Part shown: positions 39,639 through 63,603 of the stretch, in pieces
Layout of the letters: every line of letters starts with the position of its first letter
How positions within the stretch are numbered: position 1 is the stretch's first letter
Source of the DNA: Thalia democratica
Lineage: Eukaryota
DNA: 64,000 bases
Direction: 5' to 3'
Assembly (NCBI GenBank): GCA_965202585.1
Contig: OZ241829.1
Span: 26,350,001-26,414,000 of the forward strand
Position numbers and translations under genes: made by a program
Notes under the pieces: model-generated
Seen by the model: the letters and a program-made list of their open reading frames with translations, nothing else
Told to the model about the DNA's origin: nothing
The model's database searches: none

Positions 39639-41110
39639 ATGATAGTGATGATAAAAAACACATTTGTAAGGAAGCTAAAATAAAACCTTCTATAGAAACT
39701 ATTGATATTAAAAAATAAAATTAATAAAACTCCACAATCTTTTCCAAGTTATGATTCTGATGAAAATGATTTTGTAAATAATGCTGATTATAAAGAATTT
39801 AAAAGTAACTATAGTAAAACAAAATAAAACTTAAAAACTGTTCATGGTCAAAAAGAAAACAATAAGGGTAATAACATTGAGCAATCAGTTTCAATTGAAG
39901 ATACAAAAAACAATGAATTAGAAAACAATTTGGATAATGTCTTTATTAAACCTTACAGAGAATTTAAACAAAACAAGGATATATATGAGTTATTAATTAA
40001 CTGTAATCAAGTTTTTGATAAAATACCAAACGTTATAAAAAGCAATAAACAATTTGTTGTTGACATGAACAATTATTATTTTCCGAATAGAAAAAGACCT
40101 TTTAAATTTTTTGATGATTGCGGGGAGTGGGATTACAAAACTAAAAACATTGTATTACTTAAAATCAAATTTTTCTCAAGTTTATAAAAAAGATGTTTTT
40201 TTTTCAAAAAGTCTAAATCTTGCTCTGTAGAAACTCTAATAAAAATACCAGATGAAATAAAAGAACCTGGCATAGTTAAATTTGTATGGTATAAAACAAA
40301 ACTGAAACTTGATGAAAAATTTTTTAGAATAGTTACAGTTATAGTTTCAAATAAAATCAAAAGAGCTTTGTTTCAGTACATAGGTAAACAACCCATGAAA
40401 TGTAAAAAAATAAGAGTTGATCCAATGTCAATTAAAAAAGTTAAAGATGACATAAATGTAAAAAGTAAAAAAATAAAGAATACTGTTTATGATCCTATTG
40501 TATCAACTAAAACTATCAAAAATACTAAATATAGAGTAAATAATAAGCACAAAGTGTTGAAAGAAAAAAATATTGCTAATGACTTGGAAAACTGTTTTGA
40601 AAAAGTTGATGATGGATTTGTTCAATATATAAAAAAATTTAATAACCCACAGTTTAATAATGTACAAGATAACTTGTCTTCGTTTGTACTTTTTACAGAA
40701 GACCAATTTCTTGACATGATCACATGTTCAAAAGATCTTGGATCAGTTTTAAGTGTAGACAGGACTTTTAACTTAGGAGCACATTTTCTAACACCTATTA
40801 CTTTAAAAACAACAAAGTTACCTTCAGAAATAATAACTCTAATCCTGTGTTTCTAGGTCCATGTTTTCTGCATAAAAAATCTAAGCAAGAGGACTAAGAT
40901 CATTTTTTCAATTTTGTTAAATCTAAAATACACAGTTATTTCCCTGAGTTTGATTTTTCCAAACTATCATTTGTGACAGATGGGGAACAAGCTCTTATAA
41001 ATTCAGTCTATAAAATATTCCCAGAAAGTTTGAAATTTAGATGCCATTTACATAGAAGTAAAAACATTATATACAATTTAAGAAAATCAAATATTAATTT
41101 TTCACAAAAA
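39639..41110 (+). mobile_element. Decayed, 3'-truncated Mutator-like (MULE) transposase
   Basis: VLSVDRTFNLGAHFLTPIT (first D), frameshift, NPVFLGPCFLHKKSKQED*, FVTDGEQALINSV..IFPESLKFRCHLH (second D and CxxH). Sequence ends before the catalytic E region. Confidence 0.8.
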
Positions 41111-44100
41111 GCAAAAATAAAACGAAGGGTACAGAAGGTAATGATCAGCCTTGCAAAATTGGTAGGTGACAGTTGTGTTGAGCCAGTACTCGTTAACATC
41201 AACGCTGTAGTAGTATGCCACTTGGTAATTTTCTGTGTTCGGCGGGTCACCGCATTCTGTTGTTGGCAAAGTTGAGTTTTACTGTTTTGTTGTGCTTAAA
41301 AAATAACTTTAGCAACAAAAGTTTAACAAAATAACGTGAATTTATAAAAAAAAAGTATCAATAAAGTTTCTGACCTTTCATGCAAATTGCCACCGCACTG
41401 TTGTTCCAAGTACCGCCGTCCAAACATTCGTACACGTAATCGGCATCCTGGTCGTAGAAAGTGAAATCGACGTTGCAAACGATTTGAACGACTTCCCCTG
41501 GCAAGTTAACATTGGGCCGATGTTTGTCATTTCGCAAAAAAATCACTTCACCATCAGGAACTTCAAGCAGAGGGCATGCTGTGAAGATATATCAAGTTTG
41601 TAATACACGCTTTTTAATTTGAATTCATTCTACAACTAAACAAATTTTAATAGTATTAATACAACAATATTTCACAAACTTTTAAGGCACTTCACATCTT
41701 CTGACCATCCTTTGGAAGTGCATTCAAGTAAATTATTCACTAAAGTCGACCCGAAGCCTTCTTTGCATACGTAAGTTATTTCAACTCCGCGCACGAATTC
41801 ATCGCCCAAATAACTCTTTACAATAGTTGTCGTTGCACTGCCTATTTGCGGGCATCGGATACCTTAATTTTCGAATTTTTTTATTGCTTTGTTTTTGATT
41901 AAAACGTAGAAGAGGATTTAAAAATATAAGAGCAGTAAAAATTAGCATTCGAATATAAACGTGAAACCTTCGTGGCAGTGCGCGTTTCCTTTTTCGCACA
42001 TGGCCTTCAACTGGGTGGTACCACCGACGTCGTTGAAGCGTCCATCCATGTTTATTTCAACATAATCTTCGGCTTCGTTCCTCTCACCGGTAGGCTCCCC
42101 AGCCGCCCACCCGATGAACAAATCTTCTTCGATTCCCGGATCAACCTTTATGCTGGCTTCTGTTCCGTCCAGAAACTTGTACTCCCCTTCAGTGTTTAAA
42201 TCGTTTATTCCGGTGTAAACTCAGTCGTTGGCCCTCATTGACCTTATTGTCCTGTGAAAAGGTAAAAATTGAATTTTTTTTTACAAATGAGGTTAGTTTG
42301 CTTTCTGATTCATCTAATTGTGTTAAACTTTTACTAACGTACTACTAACTCATGATAAGGTTTCCACTTTAGCATCAACGAATGCTGCAATAAAGTACCA
42401 TTGAATTCATTTTGACAGAAAGCCAAAGCGTTTTTGTAATCATGAAGACTTGCAGACTTTTGAAATTTGAAGCATTCTGTAATATAAAAGCAGTAAGGTT
42501 TAATATTTCTCACGAAACATTTACCAGCGTAGGAGAACAGAAGAATTGTTGGTTTTTGGTACAAACCTAACAACAAAAAATTACCGTTAACGCATTGCGG
42601 AACGTTTGAATTGTCCCAATCTCCACCATCCTGGCACGTGTAAACGAAATTTCCCTCATACAGCAGCGTGTATCCCTCCTTGCAAACGTACTCGATGGTC
42701 AGAGGTGCGTCGACACTTGCGCCCTCTACGTATTTCACTGTTAAATTCAATCGGTCGAGGTCGTCATCGTTTATAGGTAAGTTTCCACAGCCTGTAGTTC
42801 AATTCAATTACATTTGTGCTTAAACAAATAGTTAGGTTAAACAAAATGCTCTAAAGTATGCGGTGTGAAAAAGTTAAAATTAAGTTTGTTAGTCTTTGTT
42901 TGTCTATATTAAAACTTGTAGTATAATAGGTAAGTACATAGAAGAAATTTAAAATCAAAAAGATTTTATTAAAAAGTGAAAAATCTGACTTAAAACTGTA
43001 ACTTATGCGACTAGTGAGTTATAAAAATTACTTAAAGAATAGAAATAGCTTCCGTGAAATGCAGTAAAACGATGATTAACCTCTCCGGTGCAACACATCG
43101 TAGAGATATTTTTGTTTCAAAAAATTATATGAAAAATTAAATGAACAATTTCAAGTGGAAATAAACAGCTGCCGCAAATGTTGTAATACAAATCTAAACA
43201 GAGTTATTTGTATAAAGCACATGGTTTTTACCGTGGCATTTGCCTACCGATCCCTCCCACTTGCCAGTTCCATTGCAACGCCTTGTGTTCAGGGATTCAG
43301 GGAAGAGTGTGAAATCACTGGAGCATTGGTACTCAGCTGTCTGGCTCCAAGCACTGTAAATAGTCAACACAGCCGCAACTCCGTTTGCAAGATTACCCGG
43401 AGCAGGAGGTGGACAATCTTTAAAGAAAGTTTAAGTTAACCAACTACGTTTAAGTTGGCTGGTATATAAATCTAATTTTACGCATAATTATTTGTTAAAA
43501 ATTAAGAAACATTCAAAACACGAATGTACCTAGATTGCACTTTTTTGATGCCAAGTAAATCAATTTAAGCAGGTGTGGTAGAACCGCATTCAAACGGACT
43601 ATTCAAACTGGACACAAAATTATTTTTTAGTAGTCTATTGCACAAGACAAGTGTTGTTCGGAAATATATGCATTTTTACTAAAAGGCTCATATTTATAAG
43701 AGTAGTTTTTTAAAACTTTATAGAAACTCATATGTGTTTTGTTCTACGACTCAAAGTCGTATTAATTAGAATTTAGTTTCTAATCCTCGATGACTTACTG
43801 GGTTTACATTCCCCTAGTTTTCCTGTCCATTTCCCATCACTATCACACTTCCTTTCGTTGTCTGATGCAGGAAAGAGTGTAAAGTCTTCGTTACATTGAT
43901 ACACAGCTGTATGATTCCATTCAGTGTGTTTTGTCACATCAGCTACACTTCCATTTAGAAGATCATTTGGAGCAGGTGGGCAATCTTGAAAGGAATTCAG
44001 AATAAAAGCTAATTCTTAGTTTGACTAACTATAAAAAATTAGGATATGATATAAGTTAGCTGGTATATAAATATAATTTTACGCATAATTATTAGTTAAA

Positions 44101-47100
44101 AATTAAGAAACATTCAAAACACGAATGTACCTAGATTGCATTTTTTTATGCCCAGTAAATCAATTTAACCAGGTCATAGAACCGCATTCAAACGGACTAT
44201 TCAAATTGGACACAAAAATATTTTTTAGTAGTCTATTGCACAAGACAAGTGTTACTCGGAAATATATGCATTTTTACTAAAAGACTCATATTTATAAGAG
44301 AAGTTTTGTAAAACTTTATACTCATATGTGTTTTGTTCTACGACTCAAAGTCGTATTAATTAGAATTTAGTTTCTAATCCTTAATGACTTACTGGGTTTA
44401 CATTCCCCTAGTTTTCCTGTCCATTTCCCATCACTATCACACTTCCTTTCGTTGTCTGATGCAGGAAAGAGTGTAAAGTCTTCGTTACATTGATACACAG
44501 CTGTATGATTCCATTCAGTGTGTTTTGTTACATCAGCTACACTTCCATTTAGAAGATCATTTGGAGCAGGTGGGCAATCTTGAAAGGAATTCAGAATAAA
44601 AGCTAATTTTTAGTTTGACTAACTATAAAAAAGTAGGATATGATATAAGTTGGCTGGTATATAAATCTAATTTTACGCATAACTATTAGTTAAAAATTAA
44701 GAAACATTGAAAACACGAATGTACCTAGATTGCATTTTTTTATGCCCAGTAAATCAATTTAACCAGGTCATAGAACCGCATTCAAACGGACTATTCAAAC
44801 TGGACACAAAAATATTTTTTAGTAGTCTATTGCACAAGACAAGTGTTGTTCGGAAATATATGCATTTTTACTAAAAGGCTCATATTTATAAGAGAAGTTT
44901 TGTAAAACTTTATAGAAACTCATATGTGTTTTGTTCTACGACTCAAAGTCGTATTAATCAGAATTTAGTTTCTAATCCTTGATGACTTACTGGGTTTACA
45001 TTCCCCTAGTTTTCCTGTCCATTTCCCATCACTATCACACTTCCTTTCGTTGTCTGATGCAGGAAAGAGTGTAAAGTCTTCGTTACATTGATACACAGCT
45101 GTATGATTCCATTCAGTGTGTTTTGTCACATCAGCTACACTTCCATTTAGAAGATCATTTGGAGCAGGTGGGCAATCTTGAAAGGAATTCAGAATAAAAG
45201 CTAATTTTTAGTTTGACTAACTATAAAAAAGTAGGATATGATATAAGTTGGCTGGTATATAAATCTAATTTTACGCATAACTATTAGTTAAAAATTAAGA
45301 AACATTCAAAACACGAATGTACCTAGATTGCATTTTTTTATGCCCAGTAAATCAATTTAACCAGGTCATAGAACCGCATTCAAACGGACTATTCACACTG
45401 GACACAAAAATATTTTTTAGTAGTCTATTGCACAAGACAAGTGTTGTTCGGAAATATATGCATTTTTACTAAAAGGCTCATATTTATAAGAGAAGTTTTG
45501 TAAAACTTTATAGAAACTCATATGTGTTTTGTTCTACGACTCAAAGTCGTATTAATTAGAATTTAGTTTCTAATCCTTGATGACTTACTGGGTTTACATT
45601 CCCCTAGTTTTCCTGTCCATTTCCCATCACTATCACACTTCCTTTCGTTGTCTGATGCAGGAAAGAGTGTAAAGTCTTCGTTACATTGATACACAGCTGT
45701 ATGATTCCATTCAGTGTGTTTTGTCACATCAGCTACACTTCCATTTAGAAGATCATTTGGAGCAGGTGGGCAATCTTGAAAGGAATTCAGAATAAAAGCT
45801 AATTCTTAGTTTGACTAACTATAAAAAATTAGGATATGATATAAGTTAGCTGGTATATAAATATAATTTTACGCATAATTATTAGTTAAAAATTAAGAAA
45901 CATTCAAAACACGAATGTACCTAAATTGCATTTTTTTATGCCCAGTAAATCAATTTAACCAGGTCATATAACCGCATTCAAACGGACTATTCAAACTGGA
46001 CACAAAAATATTTTTTAGTAGTCAATTGCACAAGACAAGTGTTGTTCGGAAATATATGCATTTTTACTAAAAGGCTCATATTTATAAGAGAAGTTTTGTA
46101 AAACTTTATAGAAACTCATATGTGTTTTGTTCTACGACTCAAAGTCGTATTAATTAGAATTTAGTTTCTAATCCTTGATGACTTACTGGGTTTACATTCC
46201 CCTAGTTTTCCTGTCCATTTCCCATCACTATCACACTTCCTTTCGTTGTCTGATGCAGGAAAGAGTGTAAAGTCTTCGTTACATTGATACACAGCTGTAT
46301 GATTCCATTCAGTGTGTTTTGTCACATCAGCTACACTTCCATTTAGAAGATCATTTGGAGCAGGTGGGCAATCTTGAAAGGAATTCAGAATAAAAGCTAA
46401 TTCTTAGTTTGACTAACTATAAAAAAGTAGGATATGATACAAGTTGGCTGGTATATAAATTTAATTTTACGCATAATTATTAGTTAAAAATTAAGAAACA
46501 TTCAAAACACGAATGTACCTAGATTGCATTTTTTTATGCCAAGTAAATCAATTAAACCAGGTGTGGTAGAACCGCATTCAAACAAACTATTCAAACTGGA
46601 CACAAAATTATTTTTTAGAAGCTTATTGCACAAGACAAGTGTTGTTCGAAAAAATATGCATTTTTACTAAAAGGCTCATATTTATAAGAGAAGTTTTGTA
46701 AAACTTTATAGAAACTCATATGTGTTTTGTTCTACGACTCAAAGTCTTATTAATTAGAATTTAGTTTCTAATCCTTGATGACTTACTGGGTTTACATTCC
46801 CCTAGTTTTCCTGTCCATTTCCCATCACTATCACACTTCCTTTCGTTGTCTGATGCAGGAAAGAGTGTAAAGTCTTCGTTACATTGATACACAGCTGTAT
46901 GATTCCATTCAGTGTGTTTTGTCACATCAGCTACACTTCCATTTAGAAGATCATTTGGAGCAGGTGGGCAATCTTGAAAGGAATTCAGAATAAAAGCTAA
47001 TTCTTAGTTTGACTAACTATAAAAAAGTATGATATGATATAATTTGGCTGGTATATAAATCTAATTTTACGCATAACTATTAGTTAAAAATTAAGAAACA

Positions 47101-50100
47101 TTCAAAACACGAATGTACCTAGATTGCATTTTTTTATGCTCAGTAAATCAATTTAACCAGGTCATAGAACCGCATTCAAACGGACTATTCAAACTGGACA
47201 CAAAAATATTTTTTAGTAGTCTATTGCACAAGACAAGTGTTGTTCGGAAATATATGCATTTTTACTAAAAGACTCATATTTATAAGATTAGTTTTGTAAA
47301 ACTTTATAGAAACTCATATGTGTTTTGTTCTACGACTCAAAGTCGTATTAATTAGAATTTAGTTTCTAATCCTTGATGACTTACTGGGTTTACATTCCCC
47401 TAGTTTTCCTGTCCATTTCCCATCACTATCACACTTCCTTTCGTTGTCTGATGCAGGAAAGAGTGTAAAGTCTTCGTTACATTGATACACAGCTGTATGA
47501 TTCCATTCAGTGTGTTTTGTCACATCAGCTACACTTCCATTTAGAAGATCATTTGGAGCAGGTGGGCAATCTTGAAAGGAATTCAGAATAAAAGCTAATT
47601 CTTAGTTTGACTAACTATAAAAAATTAGGATATGATATAAGTTAGCTGGTATATAAATATAATTTTACGCATAATTATTAGTTAAAAATTAAGAAACATT
47701 CAAAACACGAATGTACCTAGATTGCATTTTTTTATGCTCAGTAAATCAATTTAACCAGGTCATAGAACCGCATTCAAACGGACTATTCAAACTGGACACA
47801 AAATTATTTTTTAGAAGCTTATTGCACAAGACAAGTGTTGTTCGAAAAAATATGCATTTTTACTAAAAGGCTCATATTTATAAGAGTAGTTTTGTAAAAC
47901 TTTATAGAAACTCATATGTGTTTTGTTCTACGACTCAAAGTCGTATTAATTAGAATTTAGTTTCTAATCCTTGATGACTTACTGGGTTTACATTCCCCTA
48001 GTTTTCCTGTCCATTTCCCATCACTATCACACTTCCTTTCGTTGTCTGATGCAGGAAAGAGTGTAAAGTCTTCGTTACATTGATACACAGCTGTATGATT
48101 CCATTCAGTGTGTTTTGTCACATCAGCTACACTTCCATTTAGAAGATCATTTGGAGCAGGTGGGCAATCTTGAAAGGAATTCAGAATAAAAGCTAATTCT
48201 TAGTTTGACTAACTATAAAAAAGTAGGATATGATATAAGTTGGCTGGTATATAAATGTAATTTTACGCATAACTATTAGTTAAAAATTAAGAAACATTCC
48301 AAACACGAATGTACCTAGATTGCAATTTTTTATGCCCAGTAAATCAATTTAACCAGGTCATAGAACTGCATTCAAACGGACTATTCAAACTGGACACAAA
48401 AATATTTTTTAGTAGTCTATTGCACAAGACAAGTGTTGTTCGGAAATATATGCATTTTTACTAAAAGGCTCATATTTATAAGAGAAGTTTTGTAAAACTT
48501 TATAGAAACTCATATGTGTTTTGTTCTACGACTCAAAGTCGTATTAATTAGAATTTAGTTTCTAATCCTCGATGACTTACTGGGTTTACATTCCCCTAGT
48601 TTTCCTGTCCATTTCCCATCACTATCACACTTCCTTTCGTTGTCTGATGCAGGAAAGAGTGTAAAGTCTTCGTTACATTGATACACAGCTGTATGATTCC
48701 ATTCAGTGTGTTTTGTCACATCAGCTACACTTCCATTTAGAAGATCATTTGGAGCAGGTGGGCAATCTTGAAAGGAATTCAGAATAAAAGCTAATTCTTA
48801 GTTTGACTAACTATAAAAAAGTAGGATATGATATAAGTTGGCTGGTATATAAATCTAATTTTACGCATAACTATTAGTTAAAAATTAAGAAACATTCAAA
48901 ACACGAATGTACCTAGATTGCATTTTTTTATGCTCAGTAAATCAATTTAACCAGGTCATAGAACCGCATTCAAACGGACTATTCAAACTGGACACAAAAA
49001 TATTTTTTAGTAGTCTATTGCACAAGACAAGTGTTGTTCGGAAATATATGCATTTTTACTAAAAGACTCATATTTATAAGAGAAGTTTTGTAAAACTTTA
49101 TAGAAACTCATATGTGTTTTGTTCTACGACTCAAAGTCGTATTAATTAGAATTTAGTTTCTAATCCTTGATGACTTACTGGGTTTACATTCCCCTAGTTT
49201 TCCTGTCCATTTCCCATCACTATCACACTTCCTTTCGTTGTCTGATGCAGGAAAGAGTGTAAAGTCTTCGTTACATTGATACACAGCTGTATGATTCCAT
49301 TCAGTGTGTTTTGTCACATCAGCTACACTTCCATTTAGAAGATCATTTGGAGCAGGTGGGCAATCTTGAAAGGAATTCAGAATAAAAGCTAATTCTTAGT
49401 TTGACTAACTATAAAAAAGTAGGATATGATATAAGTTGGCTGGTATATAAATCTAATTTTACGCATAACTATTAGTTAAAAATTAAGAAACATTCAAAAC
49501 ACGAATGTACCTAGATTGCATTTTTTTATGCCAAGTAAATCAATTAAACCAGGTCATAGAACCGCATTCAAACGGACTATTCAAACTGGACACAAAAATA
49601 TTTTTTAGTAGTCTATTGCACAAGACAAGTGTTGTTCGGAAATATATGCATTTTTACTAAAAGGCTCATATTTATAAGAGAAGTTTTGTAAAACTTTATA
49701 GAAACTCATATGTGTTTTGTTCTACGACTCAAAGTCGTATTAATTAGAATTTAGTTTCTAATCCTTGATGACTTACTGGGTTTACATTCCCCTAGTTTTC
49801 CTGTCCATTTCCCATCACTATCACACTTCCTTTCGTTGTCTGATGCAGGAAAGAGTGTAAAGTCTTCGTTACATTGATACACAGCTGTATGATTCCATTC
49901 AGTGTGTTTTGTCACATCAGCTACACTTCCATTTAGAAGATCATTTGGAGCAGGTGGGCAATCTTGAAAGGAATTCAGAATAAAAGCTAATTCTTAGTTT
50001 GACTAACTATAAAAAAGTAGGATATGATATAAGTTGGCTGGTATATAAATCCAATTTTACGCATAACTATTAGTTAAAAATTAAGAAACATTCAAAACAC

Positions 50101-53100
50101 GAATGTACCTAGATTGCAATTTTTTATGCCCAGTAAATCAATTTAACCAGGTCATAGAACCGCATTCAAACGGACTATTCAAACTGGACACAAAAATATT
50201 TTTTAGTAGTCTATTGCACAAGACAAGTGTTGTTCGGAAATATATGCATTTTTACTAAAAGGCTCATATTTATAAGAGAAGTTTTGTAAAACTTTATAGA
50301 AACTCATATGTGTTTTGTTCTACGACTCAAAGTCGTATTAATTAGAATTTAGTTTCTAATCCTTGATGACTTACTGGGTTTACATTCCCCTAGTTTTCCT
50401 GTCCATTTCCCATCACTATCACACTTCCTTTCGTTGTCTGATGCAGGAAAGAGTGTAAAGTCTTCGTTACATTGATACACAGCTGTATGATTCCATTCAG
50501 TGTGTTTTGTCACATCAGCTACACTTCCATTTAGAAGATCATTTGGAGCAGGTGGGCAATCTTGAAAGGAATTCAGAATAAAAGCTAATTCTTAGTTTGA
50601 CTAACTATAAAAAAGTAGGATATGATATAAGTTGGCTGGTATATAAATGTAATTTTACGCATAACTATTAGTTAAAAATTAACAAACATTCAAAACACGA
50701 ATGTACCTAGATTGCATTTTTTTATGCCCAGTAAATCAATTTAACCAGGTCATAGAACCGCATTCAAACGGACTATTCAAACTGGACACAAAAATATTTT
50801 TTAGTAGTCTATTGCACAAGACAAGTGTTGTTCGGAAATATATGCATTTTTACTAAAAGACTCATATTTATAAGAGAAGTTTTGTAAAACTTTATAGAAA
50901 CTCATATGTGTTTTGTTCTACGACTCAAAGTCGTATTAATTAGAATTTAGTTTCTAATCCTTGATGACTTACTGGGTTTACATTCCCCTAGTTTTCCTGT
51001 CCATTTCCCATCACTATCACACTTCCTTTCGTTGTCTGATGCAGGAAAGAGTGTAAAGTCTTCGTTACATTGATACACAGCTGTATGATTCCATTCAGTG
51101 TGTTTTGTCACATCAGCTACACTTCCATTTAGAAGATCATTTGGAGCAGGTGGGCAATCTTGAAAGGAATTCAGAATAAAAGCTAATTCTTAGTTTGACT
51201 AACTATAAAAAAGTAGGATATGATATAAGTTGGCTGGTATATAAATCTAATTTTACGCATAACTATTAGTTAAAAATTAAGAAACATTCCAAACACGAAT
51301 GTACCTAGATTGCAATTTTTTATGCCCAGTAAATCAATTTAACCAGGTCATAGAACTGCATTCAAACGGACTATTCAAACTGGACACAAAAATATTTTTT
51401 AGTAGTCTATTGCACAAGACAAGTGTTGTTCGGAAATATATGCATTTTTACTAAAAGGCTCATATTTATAAGAGAAGTTTTGTAAAACTTTATAGAAACT
51501 CATATGTGTTTTGTTCTACGACTCAAAGTCGTATTAATTAGAATTTAGTTTCTAATCCTTGATGACTTACTGGGTTTACATTCCCCTAGTTTTCCTGTCC
51601 ATTTCCCATCACTATCACACTTCCTTTCGTTGTCTGATGCAGGAAAGAGTGTAAAGTCTTCGTTACATTGATACACAGCTGTATGATTCCATTCAGTGTT
51701 TTTTGTCACATCAGCTATACTTCCATTTAGAAGATCATTTGGAGCAGGTGGGCAATCTTGAAAGGAATTCAGAATAAAAGCTAATTCTTAGTTTGACTAA
51801 CTATAAAAAAGTAGGATATGATATAAGTTGGCTGGTATATAAAATTAATTTTACGCATAATTATTAGTTAAAAATTAACAAACATTCAAAACACGAATGT
51901 ACCTAGATTGCATTTTTTTATGCCCAGTAAATCAATTTAACCAGGTCATAGAACTGCATTCAAACGGACTATTCAAACTGGACACAAAATTATTTTTTAG
52001 TAGTCAATTGCACAAGACAAGTGTTGTTCGGAAAAATATGCATTTTTACTAAAAGGCTTATATTTATAAGATTAGTTTTGTAAAACTTTATAGAAACTCA
52101 TATGTGTTTTGTTCTACGACTCAAAGTCTTATTAATTAGAATTTAGTTTCTAACCCTTGATGACTTACTGGGTTTACATTCCCCTAGTTTTCCTGTCCAT
52201 TTCCCATCACTATCACACTTCCTTTCGTTGTCTGATGCAGGAAAGAGTGTAAAGTCTTCGTTACATTGATACACAGCTGTATGATTCCATTCAGTGTGTT
52301 TTGTCACATCAGCTACACTTCCATTTAGAAGATCATTTGGAGCAGGTGGGCAATCTTGAAAGGAATTCAGAATAAAAGCTAATTCTTAGTTTGACTAACT
52401 ATAAAAAAGTAGGATATGATATAAGTTGGCTGGTATATAAATCTAATTTTACGCATAATTATTAGTTAAAAATTAAGAAACATTCAAAACACGAATGTAC
52501 CTAGATTGCATTTTTTTATGCTCAGTAAATCAATTTAACCAGGTCATAGAACCGCATTCAAACGGACTATTCAAACTGGACACAAAAATATTTTTTAGTA
52601 GTCTATTGCACAAGACAAGTGTTGTTCGGAAATATATGCATTTTTACTAAAAGGCTCATATTTATAAGATTAGTTTTGTAAAACTTTATAGAAACTCATA
52701 TGTGTTTTGTTCTACGACTCAAAGTCTTATTAATTAGAATTTAGTTTCTAACCCTTGATGACTTACTGGGTTTACATTCCCCTAGTTTTCCTGTCCATTT
52801 CCCATCACTATCACACTTCCTTTCGTTGTCTGATGCAGGAAAGAGTGTAAAGTCTTCGTTACATTGATACACAGCTGTATGATTCCATTCAGTGTGTTTT
52901 GTCACATCAGCTACACTTCCATTTAGAAGATCATTTGGAGCAGGTGGGCAATCTTGAAAGGAATTCAGAATAAAAGCTAATTTTTAGTTTGACTAACTAT
53001 AAAAAAGTAGGATATGATATAAGTTGGCTGGTATATAAATTTAATTTTACGCATAACTATTAGTTAAAATTAAGAAACATTCAAAACACGAATGTACCTA

Positions 53101-56100
53101 GATTGCATTTTTTTATGCCAAGTAAATCAATTAAACCAGGTGTGGTAGAACCGCATTCAAACGGACTATTCAAACTGGACACAAAATTATTTTTTAGAAG
53201 CTTATTGCACAAGACAAGTGTTGTTCGAAAAAATATGCATTTTTACTAAAAGGCTCATATTTATAAGATTAGTTTTGTAAAACTTTATAGAAACTCATAT
53301 GTGTTTTGTTCTACGACTCAAAGTCGTATTAATTAGAATTTAGTTTCTAACCCTTGATGACTTACTGGGTTTACATTCCCCTAGTTTTCCTGTCCATTTC
53401 CCATCACTATCACACTTCCTTTCGTTGTCTGATGCAGGAAAGAGTGTAAAGTCTTCGTTACATTGATACACAGCTGTATGATTCCATTCAATGTGTTTTG
53501 TCACATCAGCTACACTTCCATTTAGAAGATCATTTGGAGCAGGTGGGCAATCTTGAAAGGAATTCAGAATAAAAGCTAATTCTTAGTTTGACTAACTATA
53601 AAAAAGTAGGATATGATATAAGTTGGCTGGTATATGAATCTAATTTTACGCATAACTATTAGTTAAAAATTAAGAAACATTCAAAACACGAATGTACCTA
53701 GATTGCAATTTTTTATGCCCAGTAAATCAATTTAACCAGGTCATAGAACCGCATTCAAACGGACTATTCAAACTGGACACAAAAATATTTTTTAGTAGTC
53801 TATTGCACAAGACAAGTGTTGTTCGGAAATATATGCATTTTTACTAAAAGGCTCATATTTATAAGATTAGTTTTGTAAAACTTTATAGAAACTCATATGT
53901 GTTTTGTTCTACGACTCAAAGTCGTATTAATTAGAATTTAGTTTCTAATCCTTGATGACTTACTGGGTTTACATTCCCCTAGTTTTCCTGTCCATTTCCC
54001 ATCACTATCACACTTCCTTTCGTTGTCTGATGCAGGAAAGAGTGTAAAGTCTTCGTTACATTGATACACAGCTGTATGATTCCATTCAGTGTGTTTTGTC
54101 ACATCAGCTACACTTCCATTTAGAAGATCATTTGGAGCAGGTGGGCAATCTTGAAAGGAATTCAGAATAAAAGCTAATTCTTAGTTTGACTAACTATAAA
54201 AAAGTAGGATATGATATAAGTTGGCTGGTATATAAATTTAATTTTACGCATAATTATTAGTTAAAAATTAACAAACATTCAAAACACGAATGTACCTAGA
54301 TTGCATTTTTTTATGCCCAGTAAATCAATTTAACCAGGTCATAGAACCGCATTCAAACGGACTATTCAAACTGGACACAAAATTATCTTTTAGTAGTCAA
54401 TTGCACAAGACAAGTGTTGTTCGGAAAAATATGCATTTTTACTAAAAGGCTCATATTTATAAGATTAGTTTTGTAAAACTTTATAGAAACTCATATGTGT
54501 TTTGTTCTACGACTCAAAGTCTTATTAATTAGAATTTAGTTTCTAACCCTTGATGACTTACTGGGTTTACATTCCCCTAGTTTTCCTGTCCATTTCCCAT
54601 CACTATCACACTTCCTTTCGTTGTCTGATGCAGGAAAGAGTGTAAAGTCTTCGTTACATTGATACACAGCTGTATGATTCCATTCAGTGTGTTTTGTCAC
54701 ATCAGGTACACTTCCATTTAGAAGATCATTTGGAGCAGGTGGGCAATCTTGAAAGGAATTCAGAATAAAAGCTAATTCTTAGTTTGACTAACTATAAAAA
54801 AGTAGGATATGATATAAGTTGGCTGGTATATAAATTTAATTTTACGCATAATTATTAGTTAAAAATTAACAAACATTCAAAACACGAATGTACCTAGATT
54901 GCATTTTTTTATGCCCAGTAAATCAATTTAACCAGGTCATAGAACCGCATTCAAACGGACTATTCAAACTAGACACAAAATTATTTTTTAGTAGTCAATT
55001 GCACAAGACAAGTGTTGTTCGGAAAAATATGCATTTTTACTAAAAGGCTCATATTTATAAGATTAGTTTTGTAAAACTTTATAGAAACTCATATGTGTTT
55101 TGTTCTACGACTCAAAGTCTTATTAATTAGAATTTAGTTTCTAACCCTTGATGACTTACTGGGTTTACATTCCCCTAGTTTTCCTGTCCATTTCCCATCA
55201 CTATCACACTTCCTTTCGTTGTCTGATGCAGGAAAGAGTGTAAAGTCTTCGTTACATTGATACACAGCTGTATGATTCCATTCAGTGTGTTTTGTCACAT
55301 CAGCTACACTTCCATTTAGAAGATCATTTGGAGCAGGTGGGCAATCTTGAAAGGAATTCAGAATAAAAGCTAATTCTTAGTTTGACTAACTATAAAAAAG
55401 TAGGATATGATATAAGTTGGCTGGTATATAAATCTAATTTTACGCATAATTATTAGTTAAAAATTAAGAAACATTCAAAACACGAATGTACCTAGATTGC
55501 ATTTTTTTATGCTCAGTAAATCAATTTAACCAGGTCATAGAACCGCATTCAAACGGACTATTCAAACTGGACACAAAAATATTTTTTAGTAGTCTATTGC
55601 ACAAGACAAGTGTTGTTCGGAAATATATGCATTTTTACTAAAAGACTCATATTTATAAGAGAAGTTTTGTAAAACTTTATAGAAACTCATATGTGTTTTG
55701 TTCTACGACTCAAAGTCGTATTAATTAGAATTTAGTTTCTAATCCTTGATGACTTACTGGGTTTACATTCCCCTAGTTTTCCTGTCCATTTCCCATCACT
55801 ATCACACTTCCTTTCGTTGTCTGATGCAGGAAAGAGTGTAAAGTCTTCGTTACATTGATACACAGCTGTATGATTCCATTCAGTGTGTTTTGTCACATCA
55901 GCTACACTTCCATTTAGAAGATCATTTCGAGCAGGTGGGCAATCTTGAAAGGAATTCAGAATAAAAGCTAATTCTTAGTTTGACTAACTATAAAAAATTA
56001 GGATATGATATAAGTTGGCTGGTATATAAATTTAATTTTAAGCATAATTATTAGTTAAAAATTAACAAACATTCAAAACACGAATGTACCTAGATTGCAT

Positions 56101-59100
56101 TTTTTTATGCCCAGTAAATCAATTTAACCAGGTCATAGAACCGCATTCAAACGGACTATTCAAACTGGACACAAAAATATTTTTTAGTAGTCTATTGCAC
56201 AAGACAAGTGTTGTTCGGAAATATATGCATTTTTACTAAAAGACTCATATTTATAAGAGAAGTTTTGTAAAACTTTATAGAAACTCATATGTGTTTTGTT
56301 CTACGACTCAAAGTCTTATTAATTAGAATTTAGTTTCTAATCCTCGAAGACTTACTGGGTTTACATTCCCCTAGTTTTCCTGTCCATTTCCCATCACTAT
56401 CACACTTCCTTTCGTTGTCTGATGCAGGAAAGAGTGTAAAGTCTTCGTTACATTGATACACAGCTTTATGATTCCATTCAGTGTGTTTTGTCACATCAGG
56501 TACACTTCCATTTAGAAGATCATTTGGAGCAGGTGGGCAATCTTGAAAGGAATTCAGAATAAAAGCTAATTCTTAGTTTGACTAACTATAAAAAAGTAGG
56601 ATATGATACAATTATATAAATTTAATTTTACGCATAATTATTAGTTTAAATCAGTACTGCTTATTGTTTTTGAAACTCTTTATAAAAAGGTGCCGTGTAA
56701 AAAAAGCGATTAGGGTAGCAAAGTACAATTTTTATTTAAAAATAAACTAGAAACAACAATAAAAAATCAGAATACACTTGCTCATTACGAATCAGATTCG
56801 CAAACCTGGATGGCACTTTGGCTCTGTGTCTTTACTGTCCCAAGAACCGTCTGATTTACAGGTGAGACGACCAGCGCCGCTCGAAAGCCCGTAGCCACTA
56901 TCGCACACAAAAGTCACAATGTCCTCAGGAAGAAAGTAAGGGGGTTTTGCTCGATAAACAGACACCGCTACGTTGTTTATCGTTGTGCTTATAAGCGGGC
57001 ACTCTGTACAAGATTTTTATACGATGTTACTTGGTAGTGATCATAAGCGGACACTCTGTTTAAAATTTTATTGCCTATGTGCTTTGTTAAAAAAAGAAAC
57101 TTATAGCAGTTGTTGTCTTTCAAGTTAAATGCTTACTACTTCTTATGAGTTTTTACTAATGTTCAGTGAAACAGTGTTGTTCACAAATTTTATAAAAGTT
57201 CAAACGGCTGGTTTTGTTAAAATTACTAACAAATAGAAGAAACCAAACAGCCTAAAATACAATTAGTTACTAAATAACGTCTAAAAGTAAGATTTTAACG
57301 ATATTAAAAAAAAAATATTTTTTATACTTTAATTTCAATAATTCTTTCAGAAGAGGATAATTTTTATTTAAGTATTAAAAAGCTATGTTCTTTAATACTT
57401 CGGTAAGTTTTATTGACGAATATTAGTTTTTAAATTAAAACCTTTTTTCTAACAGCTATTTATATTTATTTTGTTTATCAAGAAAAAACTACAACACACT
57501 TTATGAAATTTAAAACAGTTACTTAAATAACTTTTCCTAGTTTAAGACAAAAAAAAACATTAGAAATAATTTTAAAAAAATTATCAAAAATCTAAGTAAT
57601 TTTTAAACTTAAACTACATTTTTTACGACTTTTAAACATAAAAAATCATTACCCATACTTTTTAACATTGCACACTTACAACCGAACAAATGTAAAAAAA
57701 TACCTCGTACGCAATCGCCAGGGTTACCGTCGAGCTTGCCGTCTTCGGTGCAGTTTATGACGTCATAGTTGCCGGTGTACACTAGATTATCATTGCATTT
57801 GTACCTGACTTGTGTTTCGATTGCGTAAGTGGAGTTCACTGTGACGTAACTCAAACCTATCTTCGTACCGTTCGAGATTGTAGGGAAGTCGCCGCAAGCT
57901 GGTGGGAATTTTTTTTTGGATTTTTAGATTTTTTATATTTTGGAGATTAAACTTTGGGTATCTTTTAAAATTTTTCAAGTTTGGTTTAAGTATAAGATTG
58001 TCTTTTTAAGTTTATAAACTGTTGTCAAACTTTAAAGATTAATTAGAGACAAAGTGTTGTGTAAGTAACACATTGAACCAATTATGCTATATAAAATACT
58101 TTTATAAAGCTGAATAGCACTTCCTAGATTTATCAAACTTTAGTAAATAAAATTCAAGATTTTTAGTAGCTGATTAACAATAAAATCTAATAAAACTATG
58201 TTTGTTTGTTATGTGGTCATTAAAGAGTTTTGTCAATACAAACATAACAAAAGTTTTGTAATTAAACAAATATTACAAAGTTTCTACATATGTTTTTTTT
58301 TTGTAAATTCGTTAGTATATTTAAAGACAAAGTTTTACTAGATGTAAAACTACCAATTCGATTACCTTAAGAACAAAAAATTTACTCACAAAAGTTTACT
58401 TAAATAATCATAGAAAAAGCAATAAAAATATATGAAGAAGTTTATTTTTAGTAAAAACTAACTTATTGTAAATTCTCTAGTAAGAGTTAAAGTACCATTA
58501 GCAAATAAACTATATTTGTTTTTGTTCTAATTAATGTTACATTAATTTGATTTGTTTATTGAGTTGCTTATTAAAATACTAAAGCTATTAGAAAATTAAA
58601 AAAAACTGACCAACGCTTTAAGACTTTGGTCAGCAACCTTTTATAAGTAACGGGCTAAATTTACTAGTTAGAGTTTTTGCAAGCCGAACTTTTAAGAAAA
58701 AATCAGAACAAAGTAGTATTAAGAGATAAAATTTTTCAAAAATAAAACTGGCAAAATAACCATTAAACTAGCATATATGTCTGCTCACAGTTGATTAAAG
58801 ACTATACTAATAAGTTTTTATTAGAAAAATATCAATTTAATTGCATTGAACAGTCGATAGTTTGCCGGCACTCTGCTGAACAGCTTTGTTTTTCAAATGA
58901 AAACACATTTACAAGATACCAAGCTATTTTCAACTAACATCTGAAGCACGATCCCATTGTACCCACTGGTATGAAAAACCAAGTACTGTACTCATCACAC
59001 ATCGCTCCCACAAAACTATCAGGCACCATCGTGTAGCTTGTGTTGCAACTGTACTTTACAACAGTACCAGGCAGGTAGACTCCTTCGTAGACCCAGTTGG

Positions 59101-61120
59101 TGACCTCGTTAGTGGAGTGTTGAATGGTCGGGATGGAGTCGGGGCATCGGGTAACTTTGTAAATGTTTTTGAAATTTGTTACTACACTTTTGGTCATTAA
59201 AACAAAAACACTTCTTAAGTTATATAAAATAACTAACAAAAGACTTTAGTTTCTAACTTATATGTAGAAAAAAATTGGTAACTATATACACAAAAAATGT
59301 AATAAATTACGCGAATAGCAGTTTCCGATTTCTCCTTGCCAAGTTCCGTTTTCCGCGCACACTTTCTGGTCGTTTTCGCTCGGAAGTATCTCGTAATTAC
59401 GATTCTTGCAAAAGTAACTCACAACTGTCCCGTTTAGGTGAACGGGTCCGACTCCGGAGTTTACTTTAAATGCAAGTTTGGGAGGCAATCCGCAATCTTA
59501 AAGAAAAAATTGTTAAGAGGTCATAAAAAACGTTAAACTATGTTTTCTCTATTTAAACAAGGAAGATTAGTATATAAAAGAAATCTTTTAACTCTTATGA
59601 GGAGCTACAACCTTTAAAAGTAAAGCTTACAAAAAATACTTACGTTTAACAAAACTTGAATTTTAAAAACTCAATTTTTTGAATTTGATAATCAAAAATT
59701 ACATATATATTCTTTTTCTTGACTTGGTTATTAAGCATCTTGCAAAAAAAAACAAGACAAAATTTAATATTTTTGCAGCCCTTCACTTACTTCTAACGCA
59801 CTGTGGAAGCTGCGGCTCAAAATTTCCGCTTCTTGCGTTGCATTTCAGCGTAGCAACAAAATCCGGGTGAATTGCAAAATCTTCGTTGCAAGTATATTTG
59901 ATTTCTTGGTGAACTTTTAATTCACCGGCTGCGCTGCTTGCTACCTGGTATGTGGAGTTAAAGTATCCGTCATCGATGTCAAGTGGAGTACCGCAGTCTG
60001 TTTATAAACTAATTTGTAAAACTATTTTGTATCAAAATTTGGAGCAGTGTTAAAAAACTTAACTTTATGTATAAACTCTTTAGAAAAATCAACTACTTTG
60101 TCGTTATTAAATGCTGACAGGATTCAGATAAAATTTTTTACTCGTAAAACTGAAGCTTACTTTTATAACACAAAGGAAAAGTCACATTCCAATTTCCGTT
60201 TTCTAAGCATTCTGCAGTTGATTTTCCCACGTCACTGATGACGTAGTTTCCATTGCATCTAAACCCCACCACGTCACCGGTAAAGTACCCCTTCCTTTCA
60301 CTTTCAATATGCTTTTTTACTACAAAACTTCGAGCCTCAGCATAACCAACATTACTGCATTCTGAAAAAAATATATAATTTATTTGTATATAAAGAAGGA
60401 CTAAACAGAAAAACAACTATACTGAACGTTTTTAATACAAGTCATTTTACAATCATTTCCATTTTTTTAAAATTGTGAATTTACTTCGCAAGCAGTGAAA
60501 CTCAGATTCGTTCCAGGATCCTCCAATCAAGCAACGAGATACCGTGTCAGCATCTTTGGGTATTAGAAAGTGATCCTTCTCGCAACTGAACGAAGCAGAT
60601 CTTTCGATGATCAACGAGTCAGTAATATTCAACTTGTCCACAATCTTAATTGCGTTAGACACGTTCCTTGATTCTCTGCAATCTGCAGTTTGTTAAAAGC
60701 TCATTAAGTTTAGTTTGAATCTAGTTAAAAACAAACATGTTTTTATGACAATCTTATCAAAAGAAGTTTTATAACTTTTGACAAGAATACTCTTGATTAA
60801 AAGCTCTACAAAATTCTTTAATTGTTACGAATGGTTAAACATTTTTTTATAGTTTCAAAGAACAAACTAGTTAAATACAAAAATAATGATTCATCGATTC
60901 ATTAACACCACACACTAACCTGGGTAACAATGAAAATTCGGAGCCCACTCGCCGTCCACGTCACACTCGACAACGGAAGCGCCTGTGACGTAATGGTCAC
61001 TGCACCTGTACGTGAGACGGCTGCCGTGCACGAGCACTTCTTCGCCCCCGGCATCAACTCTGGTGACGTTTTCCGTTGCGTGCAAGCCGGAATTGTTGAA
61101 TTGAGGGATGGCGTCGCACT
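41102..61120 (-). CDS. Giant sushi/CCP-repeat + C-type lectin protein (34 complete CCP exons, 1 partial, 1 CTLD); 5' start not identified, 3' end disrupted
   Basis: Phase 1-1 exons each with the C..C..W..C CCP pattern: 61120-60920, 60682-60485, 60361-60161, 59997-59791, 59496-59311, 59154-58939, 57898-57704, 57003-56806, 22 array exons (56541-43799), 43417-43232, 42791-42585; CTLD exons 42476-42350 and 42251-41968 (YTGINDLNTEGEYKFLDG...WAAGEPTG...EDYVE...FND...AMCEK); CCP 41862-41680, 41578-41375; partial CCP 41256-41102. About 7.0 kb of coding sequence (~2,340 codons). No signal-peptide exon was found with confidence. Confidence 0.88.
43452..56645 (-). repeat. Tandem array of 22 x ~598-bp units, each one 186-bp CCP exon plus ~412-bp intron
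   Basis: Exons at 43799-43984, 44393-44578, 44991-45176, 45589-45774, 46187-46372, 46787-46972, 47385-47570, 47983-48168, 48581-48766, 49179-49364, 49777-49962, 50375-50560, 50973-51158, 51571-51756, 52169-52354, 52767-52952, 53366-53551, 53964-54149, 54562-54747, 55160-55345, 55758-55943, 56356-56541. Each has a ttcctttcaag acceptor and gtaagt donor and encodes CPPAPNDLLNGSVADVTKHTEWNHTAVYQCNEDFTLFPASDNERKCDSDGKWTGKLGECKP. Confidence 0.95.
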
Positions 61121-61775
61121 CTTTATTGTGTTTACAAATATTTAATGTTGCTTTTCAGAATGGTTAATACAGGGTTCGTGCGCAATTTTTTTTTATTTAG
61201 CCTGACTGAGACCAATTTAGCCTGACATCTTTTCAAAGTAAGGAAAATACCCTTTAAAAGTCATTTTAGGTATTTGGGGGTCTCGATTAGTACTATTATA
61301 GTTACTGACTTCAACCAGCTTTATCTCAAAAATATTTTGAGCTATAAAAATCTGCAAAAAGCAACTCATAGCTTAGAATAGTTATAACTCAATAAAATAA
61401 GACTAAATTGTGAAAAAGGTAATTGACCCCCCTATGCCCTTAACATAACAAATTCAGTAATAAGTTTTAAAATAATTTTTACTAAACACAATTGTTCAAT
61501 TTAATTAAGCACTAAGTAAAAACATTATAACCAGAATATTTATAATAAAACGACGTGCATTGTCGTGTTTTATTAAAATTTAAAATTAAACGCTTACATG
61601 AGTATTAAAATAAGTAAAAAATGTTTATTTTAGTACTTTGACTGTTACTTAAAATTGATACATAATCATAAATCCTAAACTCTAAATATTTAAGTCATAT
61701 CAGATTTAAAAAGCTTACACTTAAATAAAAGAAAAATATTAATATTTGTTTTTGTAAATAAATATGAGTTGTAAC

Positions 61776-63603
61776 TAGTGATGTACCGGACCCACAATTT
61801 CGGGTCCGGCCGGACCCGGATCCGGACTTTTTTTTTCAAATTAGAATCCGGCCGGAACCGGACCCGGACTTTTTTTTCAAATTAGAATCCGGCCGGAACC
61901 GGATCCGGACTTTTTTTTCAAATTACAATCCGGCCGGAACCGGATCCGGACTTTTTTTTCAAATTAGAGTCCGGCCGGAACCGGATCCGGACTTTTTTTT
62001 CAAAATAGAATCCGGCCGGATCCGGATATCAGACAAAAATGGCAATATCCGGCCGGATCCGGACCCGGATAGTGAGTCCAGTACATCACTAGAATAAATT
62101 AGCCTGAGTCAGAATGAGGTTTTCAAAAACTGAAAAAAAAAGAACTTTAATCAAGTAATAAGTAGAACAGCTAGCCACAAGGTTTTTAAATTTAGGTGTT
62201 ATTTACAATTAAAAATCTGAAATCAAGTTCTTGAACAAAATACACTAGAAAATTACAAAATATTGAAAACTGGATTAGCTCAAACTCATTCAAAATCTAA
62301 AAGAAAACTAGCTTGAGTTTATATAAAAAACTAAACTAGCCTGAGGCAGTCCAAGATTTTCTAAAATTCCCAAAAGTTTTCAAACTAGCAGGATTGCCAC
62401 TGTTTAAGTCAATAAAACTAGCTAGAGTGAGTATAAACAAGCCTGAGTCAGAATGAGGTTTTTAAAAACTTAAAAAATTACTTTCTAATAATCAGTAGAA
62501 CAGCTAGCAAAGGTTGACAATTTGGTAGTAAAGTTGTGGACTGATTGTGGTACACTTAACTTATTAGCACTACCCATCATAATTAAATCCTACCTTATTT
62601 AATTAATATCTAACAAATACTAAATTCTAATTGAGACTACTTTCTATAATCAGACACGACAGTTTTGAGTGATGAATCTTTTATATAAAACACAACAAGA
62701 AATACTAGCATATACAACATTATTAATTACTTTGGTAACACTTTAAAAACTGGAAGCTATTTAAATCTATATCAAAAGACTTAAAACAAAACACTAAAAA
62801 ATAAATAAAACTTTTAGTAAACAAGAAACTATAAAATTTTTAATAAACTATTAAACTATAAACCTTGCTTAAATATTTAAACAATTAAACACCTGTTGAA
62901 ATGTTCACTTTTAAAACAAAACACTACTTACAATAAGCATTCACAAAAACGTTCAAGATATTTTGTTGCTTCAAGCTACACACTAAACTAACTAACTGCT
63001 TACATATAAACTGCCTGTCATGTTCTGATGTTTTGTTGCGTCAGTATTTAGTTTGAAACATTTCGTCATATGATTCTCATTGGCTCTTACATTCAACCGT
63101 ATTAACTCTAAATATTCTCTGAGCTCAACTTTAAACAATAAATAATGCAAGTATTCATTCCAAATTTTTCAATTTTACAACATATGTAAACAGTTGCATT
63201 TCATGAAATGTTTATTTCATAGTTTAAATGTAAACAAATGTTAGTAAGTCACGCGTACAAAATGAGCCAATCACGGTAGGGTGTTTGATTTTAACTGACG
63301 AAAATAACTCTTATTAATTTACATAGGGTTTGTTTTTGAAAAAATACTTTTCAGTATGCTCTTTTTTACTAACTAGATCCGGCCGGATCTTTGTTAGGAT
63401 CCGGCCGGACCCGGATCCGGACTTTTTTTACAAATTAGAGTCCGGCCGGAACCGGACCCGGACTTTTTTTTCAAATTAGAATCCGGCCGGAACCGGATCC
63501 GGACTTTTTTTTCAAATAAGAATCCGGCCGGATCCGGATATCAGACAAAAATGGCAATATCCGGCCGGACCCGGACCCGGATAGTGAGTCCGGTACATCA
63601 CTA
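61776..63603. mobile_element. Non-autonomous hAT-type element, 1828 bp, with 8-bp TSD and an internal duplicated right end
   Basis: TIR tagtgatgtaccggac (61776) / gtccggtacatcacta (ends 63603); TSD gttgtaac at 61768-61775 and 63604-63611; ~42-bp CCGG-rich subterminal repeats at 61805-62070 and 63375-63590; extra right TIR ending at 62091. Confidence 0.85.
63073..63275. promoter_or_regulatory. Pair of opposed CCAAT boxes inside the hAT element
   Basis: gattctcattggctc at ~63073-63087 (minus-strand CCAAT) and gagccaatcac at ~63264-63274; motif match only. Confidence 0.25.

Follow-up and report, generated by a model that had tools for sequence, protein, structure and literature searches.

The kringle IV-2 (KIV-2) array of LPA is built of units of ~5.6 kb, of which an allele can hold as many as 40, accounting for up to 70% of the coding sequence (PMC11201333). 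Both its allelic copy-number variation and its inclusion in the protein are documented. Human CR1 is a long chain of CCP modules that lengthens or shortens as repeated blocks of CCPs are gained or lost. Selectins follow the order lectin, EGF, CCPs and membrane anchor. Among tunicates, Ciona has a variable CCP receptor, vCRL1 (cited in PMC5465252).

The window analysed here is a stretch of 64,000 nucleotides from Thalia democratica (assembly GCA_965202585.1, contig OZ241829.1, positions 26,350,001 to 26,414,000), and window coordinates are used throughout. Its minus strand carries 22 head-to-tail units of ~598 bp each between positions 43799 and 56541, a count that rests on the assembly. Each unit consists of a 186-nt sushi/CCP exon and a ~412-nt intron, with a spacing of 594-600 bp and 97-100% identity between units. 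The array was detected by a repeat-spacing search together with a script; Tandem Repeats Finder was also run and missed it because the period exceeds 500. The array and its exons are arranged as follows.

43799 to 56541, minus strand: array of 22 tandem units (repeat search and script; Pfam PF00084; CCP modules in the PDB)
Exon upper ends of units 1 to 11: 56541, 55943, 55345, 54747, 54149, 53551, 52952, 52354, 51756, 51158 and 50560, each exon extending 185 nt downward
Exon upper ends of units 12 to 22: 49962, 49364, 48766, 48168, 47570, 46972, 46372, 45774, 45176, 44578 and 43984, each exon extending 185 nt downward
56356 to 56541, minus strand: unit 1, the first and most diverged array exon, with A15P and with T26K, which abolishes the NHT sequon
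43799 to 43984, minus strand: unit 22, the last array exon, whose intron departs from the repeat consensus ~350 nt downstream

The 20 nucleotides preceding the exon are the same in 22/22 units, and the first six bases on the donor side read GTAAGT in every one of them. An earlier note on this DNA had described 22 units with intact splice sites and open frames, which repeat spacing and the exon script bore out. All 22 exons are open and, as the note had claimed, of phase 1-1, so that any number of units stays in frame. At the protein level 16 of the 22 units are identical, and each amino-acid change that had been named could be located: unit 1 has A>P and T>K, unit 2 has P>R, unit 4 has A>P, unit 6 has T>I, and unit 9 has both V>I and H>N. 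The repeated module comprises 62 residues with cysteines at positions 2, 31, 47 and 60 and a tryptophan at position 53, unchanged in 37/37 copies when a second array of this gene (below) is included. The linker between modules, from the last cysteine of one to the first cysteine of the next, measures 3 residues. The two N-glycan sequons attributed to each module (NGS and NHT) are present, with the exception of NHT in unit 1.

Head-to-tail units of exon plus intron that are near-identical and keep the frame (22 units at 97-100%) characterize a coding exon-intron VNTR, and the predicted coding array is of this already known kind, as are LPA KIV-2 and CR1. As in LPA, near-identical in-frame tandem units of whole exons and introns make up the bulk of the coding length. 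The two differ in that here one exon encodes one complete CCP within ~598 bp, whereas the LPA unit holds two exons in 5.6 kb and encodes a kringle; moreover, allelic copy-number variation and inclusion in the protein, documented for LPA, are putative in Thalia. The resemblance to CR1 lies in the long CCP chain with gain or loss of repeated modules. In CR1, however, the unit is a much larger block of several different CCPs, while the Thalia arrays repeat a single CCP exon, in 22 and in 15 copies that are 97-100% identical, in a gene with a lectin-like domain that CR1 lacks. Ciona vCRL1 and the predicted product of the Thalia gene are alike in being extracellular CCP proteins of tunicates.

Our preferred reading, to which we give a probability of roughly 0.72, is that of a genuine coding exon-plus-intron VNTR-like CCP array within a very long multi-CCP gene of the minus strand, in which the array turns over by unequal exchange or conversion and the 22-unit copy is a truncated duplicate. 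The array would owe both its origin and its continuing rearrangement to unequal crossing-over and gene conversion among its units. Each unit being a single phase 1-1 exon, its gain or loss would keep the frame, and array length may for that reason drift freely. In the protein, the repeated modules would make up an extended, glycosylated stalk, with the N-terminal CCPs on one side of it and the lectin module on the other. The parent gene is probably functional.

The gene runs from at least 18 unique CCP exons through the array to two CCPs, a divergent C-type-lectin-like domain and further CCPs. At least 10 additional CCP exons lie past the end of the window, and no convincing candidate for a signal-peptide exon was found upstream. 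The exons around the array are the following.

57612 to 61154, minus strand: seven more unique CCP exons (a to g) of the same gene
56806 to 57003, minus strand: unique CCP exon h, which adjoins the array upstream; 198 nt, phase 1-1, with an in-frame splice into unit 1; the two gene copies differ in this exon at 56833, 56941, 56956 and 56970
43232 to 43417, minus strand: CCP exon post1, 186 nt, phase 1-1; with ~53% protein identity, the closest relative of the repeated exon within the gene
42337 to 42798, minus strand: a CCP exon, then a short in-frame intron, then the first half of the C-type-lectin-like domain
41945 to 42220, minus strand: second half of the divergent C-type lectin domain, with the motif EPT (conglutinin and SP-A in the PDB; Pfam Lectin_C)
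41361 to 41863, minus strand: two CCP exons, p3 and p4, downstream of the lectin domain
41105 to 41278, minus strand: CCP exon p5, in which a duplication breakpoint interrupts the domain partway, after which the frame continues for 8 codons into unrelated sequence and then meets a stop

The repeated exon scores 34.4 bits against Pfam Sushi (PF00084; cut-off 20.7, E = 2.9e-8), and most of the flanking exons also score above the cut-off. It displays the four-cysteine pattern C1..C4 with the conserved tryptophan between C3 and C4. In the PDB it matches DAF/CD55 (1.2e-9) and CR2 (6e-9), as well as CCPs of factor H, beta2-GPI, MASP-2 and E-selectin. The second-half lectin exon, scanned alone, reaches 14.1 bits against Pfam Lectin_C (PF00059; cut-off 22.6) and its PDB matches include collectin CRDs (2.2e-5 to 7e-4), with conglutinin as the best (2.2e-5) and SP-A at 1.2e-4. 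The alignment to conglutinin places Y and G at two cysteine positions, so that the long-loop cysteine pair is absent, and reads EPT where the sugar-binding motif EPN/QPD would stand.

Like selectins, the Thalia gene is predicted to encode an extracellular protein that joins a CCP chain with a C-type lectin domain. Unlike in selectins, the lectin-like domain comes after the CCP array, no EGF family scored above threshold in any exon scanned against Pfam, and no membrane anchor was identified. Membership of the selectin family was rejected on domain order, the lectin-like domain being C-terminal to at least 30 CCPs.

The array is located in copy R of what is probably a true tandem duplication of ~75-82 kb. 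Copy L, 75 kb distant, holds the same gene with 15 units, and the array flanks of the two copies are 99.3% identical. Identity across the duplicated segment is 96-99.25%; the copies diverge by 0.7-3.8%, and by 0.7% in the gene. In a third paralogue, which is older, one such unit is accompanied by four copies of another CCP exon. Array length is thus labile, with 22 units in one gene copy, 15 in its tandem counterpart and 1 in the paralogue, all observed in one assembly. The two copies meet at the following point.

41123 to 41126, no strand: duplication junction, where the end of copy L is joined to the start of copy R; the transition is abrupt, with 2 nt of filler and neither overlap nor N

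NAHR between 1.3-kb repeats near the segment ends was considered as the mechanism of this duplication and rejected, because the junction lies 2.2 kb past the 1.3-kb repeat, in non-homologous sequence. With the stop that follows the breakpoint in p5, the 3′ end of the 22-unit gene is lost: half of one CCP, at least 2 further CCPs and the C-terminus are removed. The two cysteines that remain in the truncated p5 have no disulfide partners, and one extra cysteine precedes the stop. Judged from its sequence, the 22-unit copy is a young, 3′-truncated duplicate of the full-length 15-unit gene.

Because the breakpoint cuts the 3′ end of the gene, it is doubtful that a working protein is made from the 22-unit array. 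The 22-unit gene may even have been dead on arrival, yielding no useful protein and leaving its array to drift neutrally while only the 15-unit copy works; we rate this as a serious possibility, somewhat short of an even chance. It is favored by the interrupted p5 with its early stop and unpaired cysteines, and by a 1.86-kb transposon-like insertion in an intron of the 22-unit copy alone. Nonetheless, this copy retains its exons and splice sites intact throughout, and private exon changes occur in it no more often than in the 15-unit copy. The duplication, at 0.7% in the gene, is also too young for decay to be visible, and a truncated secreted protein may yet be made.

The diversity of the units provided insights into the turnover of the array. 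The earlier note had taken the introns to be nearly as homogeneous as the exons, a claim that did not hold: within the 22-unit array, pi is 0.0039 in the exon vs 0.029 in the intron (~7x), and the introns differ in all 21 complete units, making 21/21 of these distinct. Across the 37 exons of both arrays, exon diversity is 6.6x below that of the intron (segregating sites 12/186 vs 71/344, p = 9e-6), and there are no stops, frameshifts or splice changes. Eleven of the 12 exon variants are nonsynonymous, and synonymous sites are depleted to about the same degree as nonsynonymous ones, such that simple protein-level purifying selection fails to explain the homogeneity of the exon. The amino-acid changes cluster at residues 14-26 and spare the Cys/Trp core.

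Intron variants common to several units lie scattered and show no decay with distance, a pattern that repeated unequal exchange would produce but that multiplication of one unit by an assembler would not. The ~7x more diverse introns and the distinctness of all complete units likewise make the array unlike a copy-paste assembly artefact and indicate that it is not extremely young. Some unit types occur in both arrays in partly colinear order (R6-R7 = L7-L8, R22 = L15, R3 = L14), and units differ on average by 12.4 and 16.1 inside the two arrays, compared with 15.3 from one array to the other. The common unit types, which have 2-3 differences, suggest that the array and its intron diversity are older than the 75-82 kb duplication, and the comparison of the sister arrays dates the amplification to before that event. 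Hence, the recent amplification of one sushi exon that had been proposed is real, as an exon-plus-intron amplification in a multi-CCP gene with a lectin-like domain, while "recent" applies in a relative sense only.

An assembly artefact, whether as an inflated array or as two haplotypes of one locus falsely placed in tandem as the 22- and 15-unit copies, is an unlikely alternative. Divergence of 0.7-3.8% between copies is plausible as haplotype difference in an outbred marine invertebrate, and a run of 138 N interrupts copy L at 23410-23547. A second sample, X2, which has SNP differences from the window, shows a single letter at 21/22 of the sites that distinguish the gene copies and thus one mosaic sequence type, which suggests that this individual may lack the 75-82 kb duplication or carry it in homogenised form. 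False tandem duplications are, in addition, a known assembly error (PMC9516828). If this were such a case, a single animal would carry two alleles, of 22 and 15 units, that differ in array length. The junction, however, is abrupt and free of N and of any overlapping repeat, and an overlap-based assembler would require reads containing it; we read it as probably real. The N run is flanked on either side by sequence colinear with the other copy, each unit is distinct, and no alternative-haplotype contig with an array unit was found elsewhere in the assembly. In X2, the array contigs have a summed word depth that spans 1,900-15,000 over all bins and amounts to ~11,500-15,000 in the fullest ones, with a unique flank at ~530-650; at ~20x this flank in the fullest bins, this is a rough sign of many copies, contig word depth not being a copy number.

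Searches of other datasets returned few matches. An exon word search of 5.8 billion proteins matched a single cluster, a Tara Oceans contig that holds the unit at 94% nucleotide identity as an unspliced genomic fragment, and no spliced exon-exon fragment was found in it. A scan of JGI metagenomes gave no match. Three runs of unknown kind displayed only chance matches of 18-22 nt at the locus, and 0/22 listed runs are recorded as RNA.

The array might be a selected, length-tunable spacer, akin to the molecular ruler of the earlier note: copy number or exon skipping would determine how far the N-terminal CCPs extend from the lectin module, and the paralogues would differ adaptively. Such a spacer would fit the phase 1-1 design throughout, the short linkers and paired sequons, the concentration of paralogue differences in the middle region (22, 15 and 1+4 modules), and the sparing of the Cys/Trp core with changes clustered at residues 14-26, but we consider it quite improbable. 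Length variation is the default outcome for any tandem array. Most speculative of all, stalk length could be the selected variable in a family of three recognition or adhesion paralogues, with an exon-centred process (conversion tracts or a splicing constraint) keeping the exon uniform at the nucleotide level. Such exon-centred homogenisation would leave synonymous sites about as depleted as nonsynonymous ones and few changes, clustered as observed here.

Under the preferred reading of a genuine array in a partly duplicated gene, the locus is a clear and completely resolved case of a coding exon-intron VNTR outside the vertebrates. For annotation, it means that the 22-unit gene is to be treated as 3′-truncated and that pipelines based on short reads will mis-model both copies. 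The sister arrays, with near-identical flanks, and the one-unit older paralogue constitute a built-in comparison, in which reshuffling of units appears to proceed faster than point mutation. These findings bear on the understanding of how invertebrate chordates may diversify their extracellular recognition proteins.

A repeat search found 22 copies at window positions 43579-56582, whose starts lie 594-600 bp apart; this period is beyond the limit of 500 in Tandem Repeats Finder, which did not detect the array in the window. The coding strand is minus. A script that used the exon core as its anchor recovered 22 sushi/complement control protein (CCP) exons, each of exactly 186 nt. The earlier note had described 22 units with intact splice sites, open frames and phase 1-1 throughout, and all of this was borne out: the 20 nt preceding the acceptor and the donor start GTAAGT are identical in 22/22 exons, as are the phase and the open frame, so that each unit adds 62 codons. 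The same protein is encoded by 16 of the 22 exons. The substitutions named in that note were all recovered, namely A>P in units 1 and 4, T>K in unit 1, P>R in unit 2, T>I in unit 6, and V>I plus H>N in unit 9. The two N-glycosylation sequons (NGS, NHT) ascribed to every module are present in 21 of the 22 units; in unit 1 the T>K change removes NHT. The module displays four cysteines (residues 2, 31, 47, and 60) and a tryptophan at residue 53. It scored 34.4 bits against Pfam Sushi (cut-off 20.7) and matched solved CCP modules of DAF, CR2, factor H, beta2-GPI, MASP-2, and E-selectin.

Stop-to-stop frames, Pfam, and tblastn, with the gene model searched exon by exon, revealed that one long minus-strand gene surrounds the array. 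The exons checked around it are also phase 1-1 and splice in frame.

Features of the gene in gene order (window positions)
Beyond the window end (stretch L014), minus: at least 10 CCP exons (frames, Pfam, tblastn)
61154-56806, minus: eight unique CCP exons, before the array
56541-43799, minus: array of 22 units, after the eight unique exons
56356-56541, minus: exon of unit 1 (exon-core script)
43799-43984, minus: exon of unit 22 (exon-core script)
43232-43417, minus: CCP exon of 186 nt, ~53% identical to the unit, directly after the array
Between the preceding exon and the lectin-like domain, minus: one additional CCP
42522-41945, minus: C-type-lectin-like domain, split across two exons
After the lectin-like domain, minus: two CCPs
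41278-41105, minus: CCP exon p5, after those two CCPs

The putative C-type lectin assignment is only partly supported by the sequence. The exon encoding the second half of the domain matched collectin CRDs in PDB (2e-5), and on its own it scored under the Pfam cut-off. It carries Y and G in place of two cysteines of conglutinin, the best-matching collectin, and EPT instead of EPN. A selectin was ruled out by the domain order and by the lack of an EGF match among the exons scanned. Immediately before the 5'-most CCP exons of the gene lie long open frames, at L019:374-1791 and L019:6471-7346 (another stretch), that looked like putative retroelement remnants.

Searching one unit against its own assembly detected a second array of 15 units on the same strand, ~66 kb below the first (C5:26318650-26327682, where C5 denotes the contig's own coordinates), with intact splice sites and frames. 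The whole gene around it is a full-length second copy, ~75 kb away from gene copy to gene copy, and the 4.9 kb of unique sequence flanking the arrays shows 99.3% identity between the two. Self-comparison of 294 kb resolved this as a tandem duplication of two copies of ~75-82 kb, with identity of 99.25% across 34 kb and 96-97.5% elsewhere, and with no third copy of the segment up to C5:26564000.

Copies of the tandem duplication (self-comparison)
C5:26316325-26391123: copy L, 15 units
C5:26391126-26473252: copy R, 22 units, the array in the window

The two copies meet abruptly at window 41123-41126, across a filler of 2 nt and with neither an overlapping repeat nor N, and this duplication junction falls inside CCP exon p5. 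Past this point, copy L completes the p5 CCP and goes on through at least two additional CCP exons, while copy R runs through 8 unrelated codons to a stop, which makes the 22-unit gene a young, 3'-truncated duplicate. An intron of the copy R gene holds a transposon-like insertion of ~1.86 kb (window 61760-63619; 39-nt terminal inverted repeats, subterminal 41-bp tandem repeats) that is absent from the matching site in copy L and is therefore younger than the duplication. The heparin-lyase-like (7513-15824) and BET-like (20130-25179) genes of the window also fall within the duplicated segment (window 1-41123 versus C5:26413603-26473252), so that second copies of both, 96-99% identical, are expected ~81 kb further along the contig. 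A run of 138 N at window 23410-23547 corresponds to ~123 bases in the other copy and is colinear on both sides; it has the look of a short segment left masked or unresolved, not of a contig join.

All 22 listed sequencing runs were stored as contigs and none was recorded as RNA; four were compared with the locus, and three of these (X20, X21, X22) had nothing there. The fourth, X2, comes from another study under another organism label, differs from the window by SNPs, and covers the whole stretch. Its summed contig word depth, which is not a copy number, was ~530-650 in unique flank and ~1,900-15,000 in array bins (~11,500-15,000 in the fullest). Array words thus amount to roughly 20 times flank words, a ratio at odds with an array of few units, although we take this only as a sign. 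Of 22 flank sites that distinguish copy L from copy R, 21 displayed a single letter in X2 (R-type at 12, L-type at 9). The 75-82 kb duplication may be missing from X2, or its copies there may be homogenised, and the result keeps alive the alternative that the two copies are retained haplotypes. We consider such an artefact improbable, since the abrupt, N-free junction without an overlapping repeat leads us to read the duplication as real in the assembled haplotype.

The units themselves argue against an assembler pasting one unit over and over. All 21 complete units of the 22-unit array are mutually distinct, variants common to non-adjacent units are scattered along it, and unit similarity did not fall off with distance (lags of 1-11 units). 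This pattern is what repeated unequal exchange and conversion would produce. The introns had been described as nearly as homogeneous as the exons, which did not hold (exon pi 0.0039 versus intron pi 0.029). Over the 37 units of both arrays, pi was 0.0058 in exons and 0.039 in introns, with 12/186 exon nt segregating versus 71/344 intron sites (p = 9e-6). No stop, frameshift, or splice change occurs among these 37 units, which is evidence that exon function has been maintained. Nonsynonymous changes account for 11 of the 12 exon variants, and synonymous exon sites are also depleted relative to intron sites (1/38 versus 71/344 segregating, p = 0.004), about as much as nonsynonymous ones. Protein-level purifying selection alone would not explain the exon uniformity; exon-centred conversion, nucleotide-level constraint, and intron hypermutability are candidate explanations. 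Eight of the 11 variable residues lie within residues 14-26 (p = 3e-4), which we take to be roughly the position of the CCP hypervariable loop.

Each CCP module spans about 3.5-4 nm, and here 3 residues link the last Cys of one module to the first Cys of the next. Fifteen to 22 modules with two N-glycan sequons each would form an extended stalk of roughly 55-85 nm, which fits the spacer idea of the earlier note. That the array is an adaptive, length-tunable ruler is nonetheless very doubtful, since length change is the default for any such array and the 22-unit copy is itself truncated. The sushi-exon array joins an already known kind of coding exon-intron VNTR, with the same design as human LPA KIV-2, a 5.6-kb two-exon unit present in up to 40 copies per allele and making up as much as 70% of the coding sequence (PMC11201333), and CR1, whose allotypes are one long homologous repeat of CCPs apart (PMC2189269).

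Several units nearly match between copy R (R1-R22) and copy L (L1-L15): R3/L14 and R13/L13 differ at 2 sites each and R2/L5 at 3. The arrays are also partly colinear (R6-R7 with L7-L8; R22 with L15). Mean unit differences were 12.4 within R, 16.1 within L, and 15.3 between arrays. These shared unit types and similar differences indicate that most unit diversity is older than the duplication. Since then, units have been gained, lost, and reordered, against just 0.7% change in the flanks.

Word matching against 5.8 billion proteins returned one cluster, of Tara Oceans metagenome contigs (L033:1-796 and L034; ERZ907932, ERZ28654669), and a JGI metagenome scan gave no match. The Tara Oceans contigs carry one unspliced unit at 94% nucleotide identity, with 7 of 8 exon differences nonsynonymous, preceded by a CCP exon that has no counterpart anywhere in the 294 kb compared. 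These contigs suggest a related population or species in which the unit sits in another context.

At C5:17.94 Mb (L015:400-9965, within C5:17936001-17946000) there is a third paralogue, older than the duplication and with 92-97% nucleotide identity. Of the unique CCP exons a-h, it has a-f and lacks g and h. Over the unique exons, pN/pS between copy R and this paralogue is ~0.76, which marks a fast-evolving gene family. In this paralogue the unit exon is single-copy, 1 nucleotide off the consensus, and after it come four copies of another CCP-exon unit, of ~296 bp, whose intron is related to part of the intron of the 22-array unit. Collectively, the 22, 15, and 1+4 modules of these genes mark the middle of the family as a hot spot of exon-array turnover.
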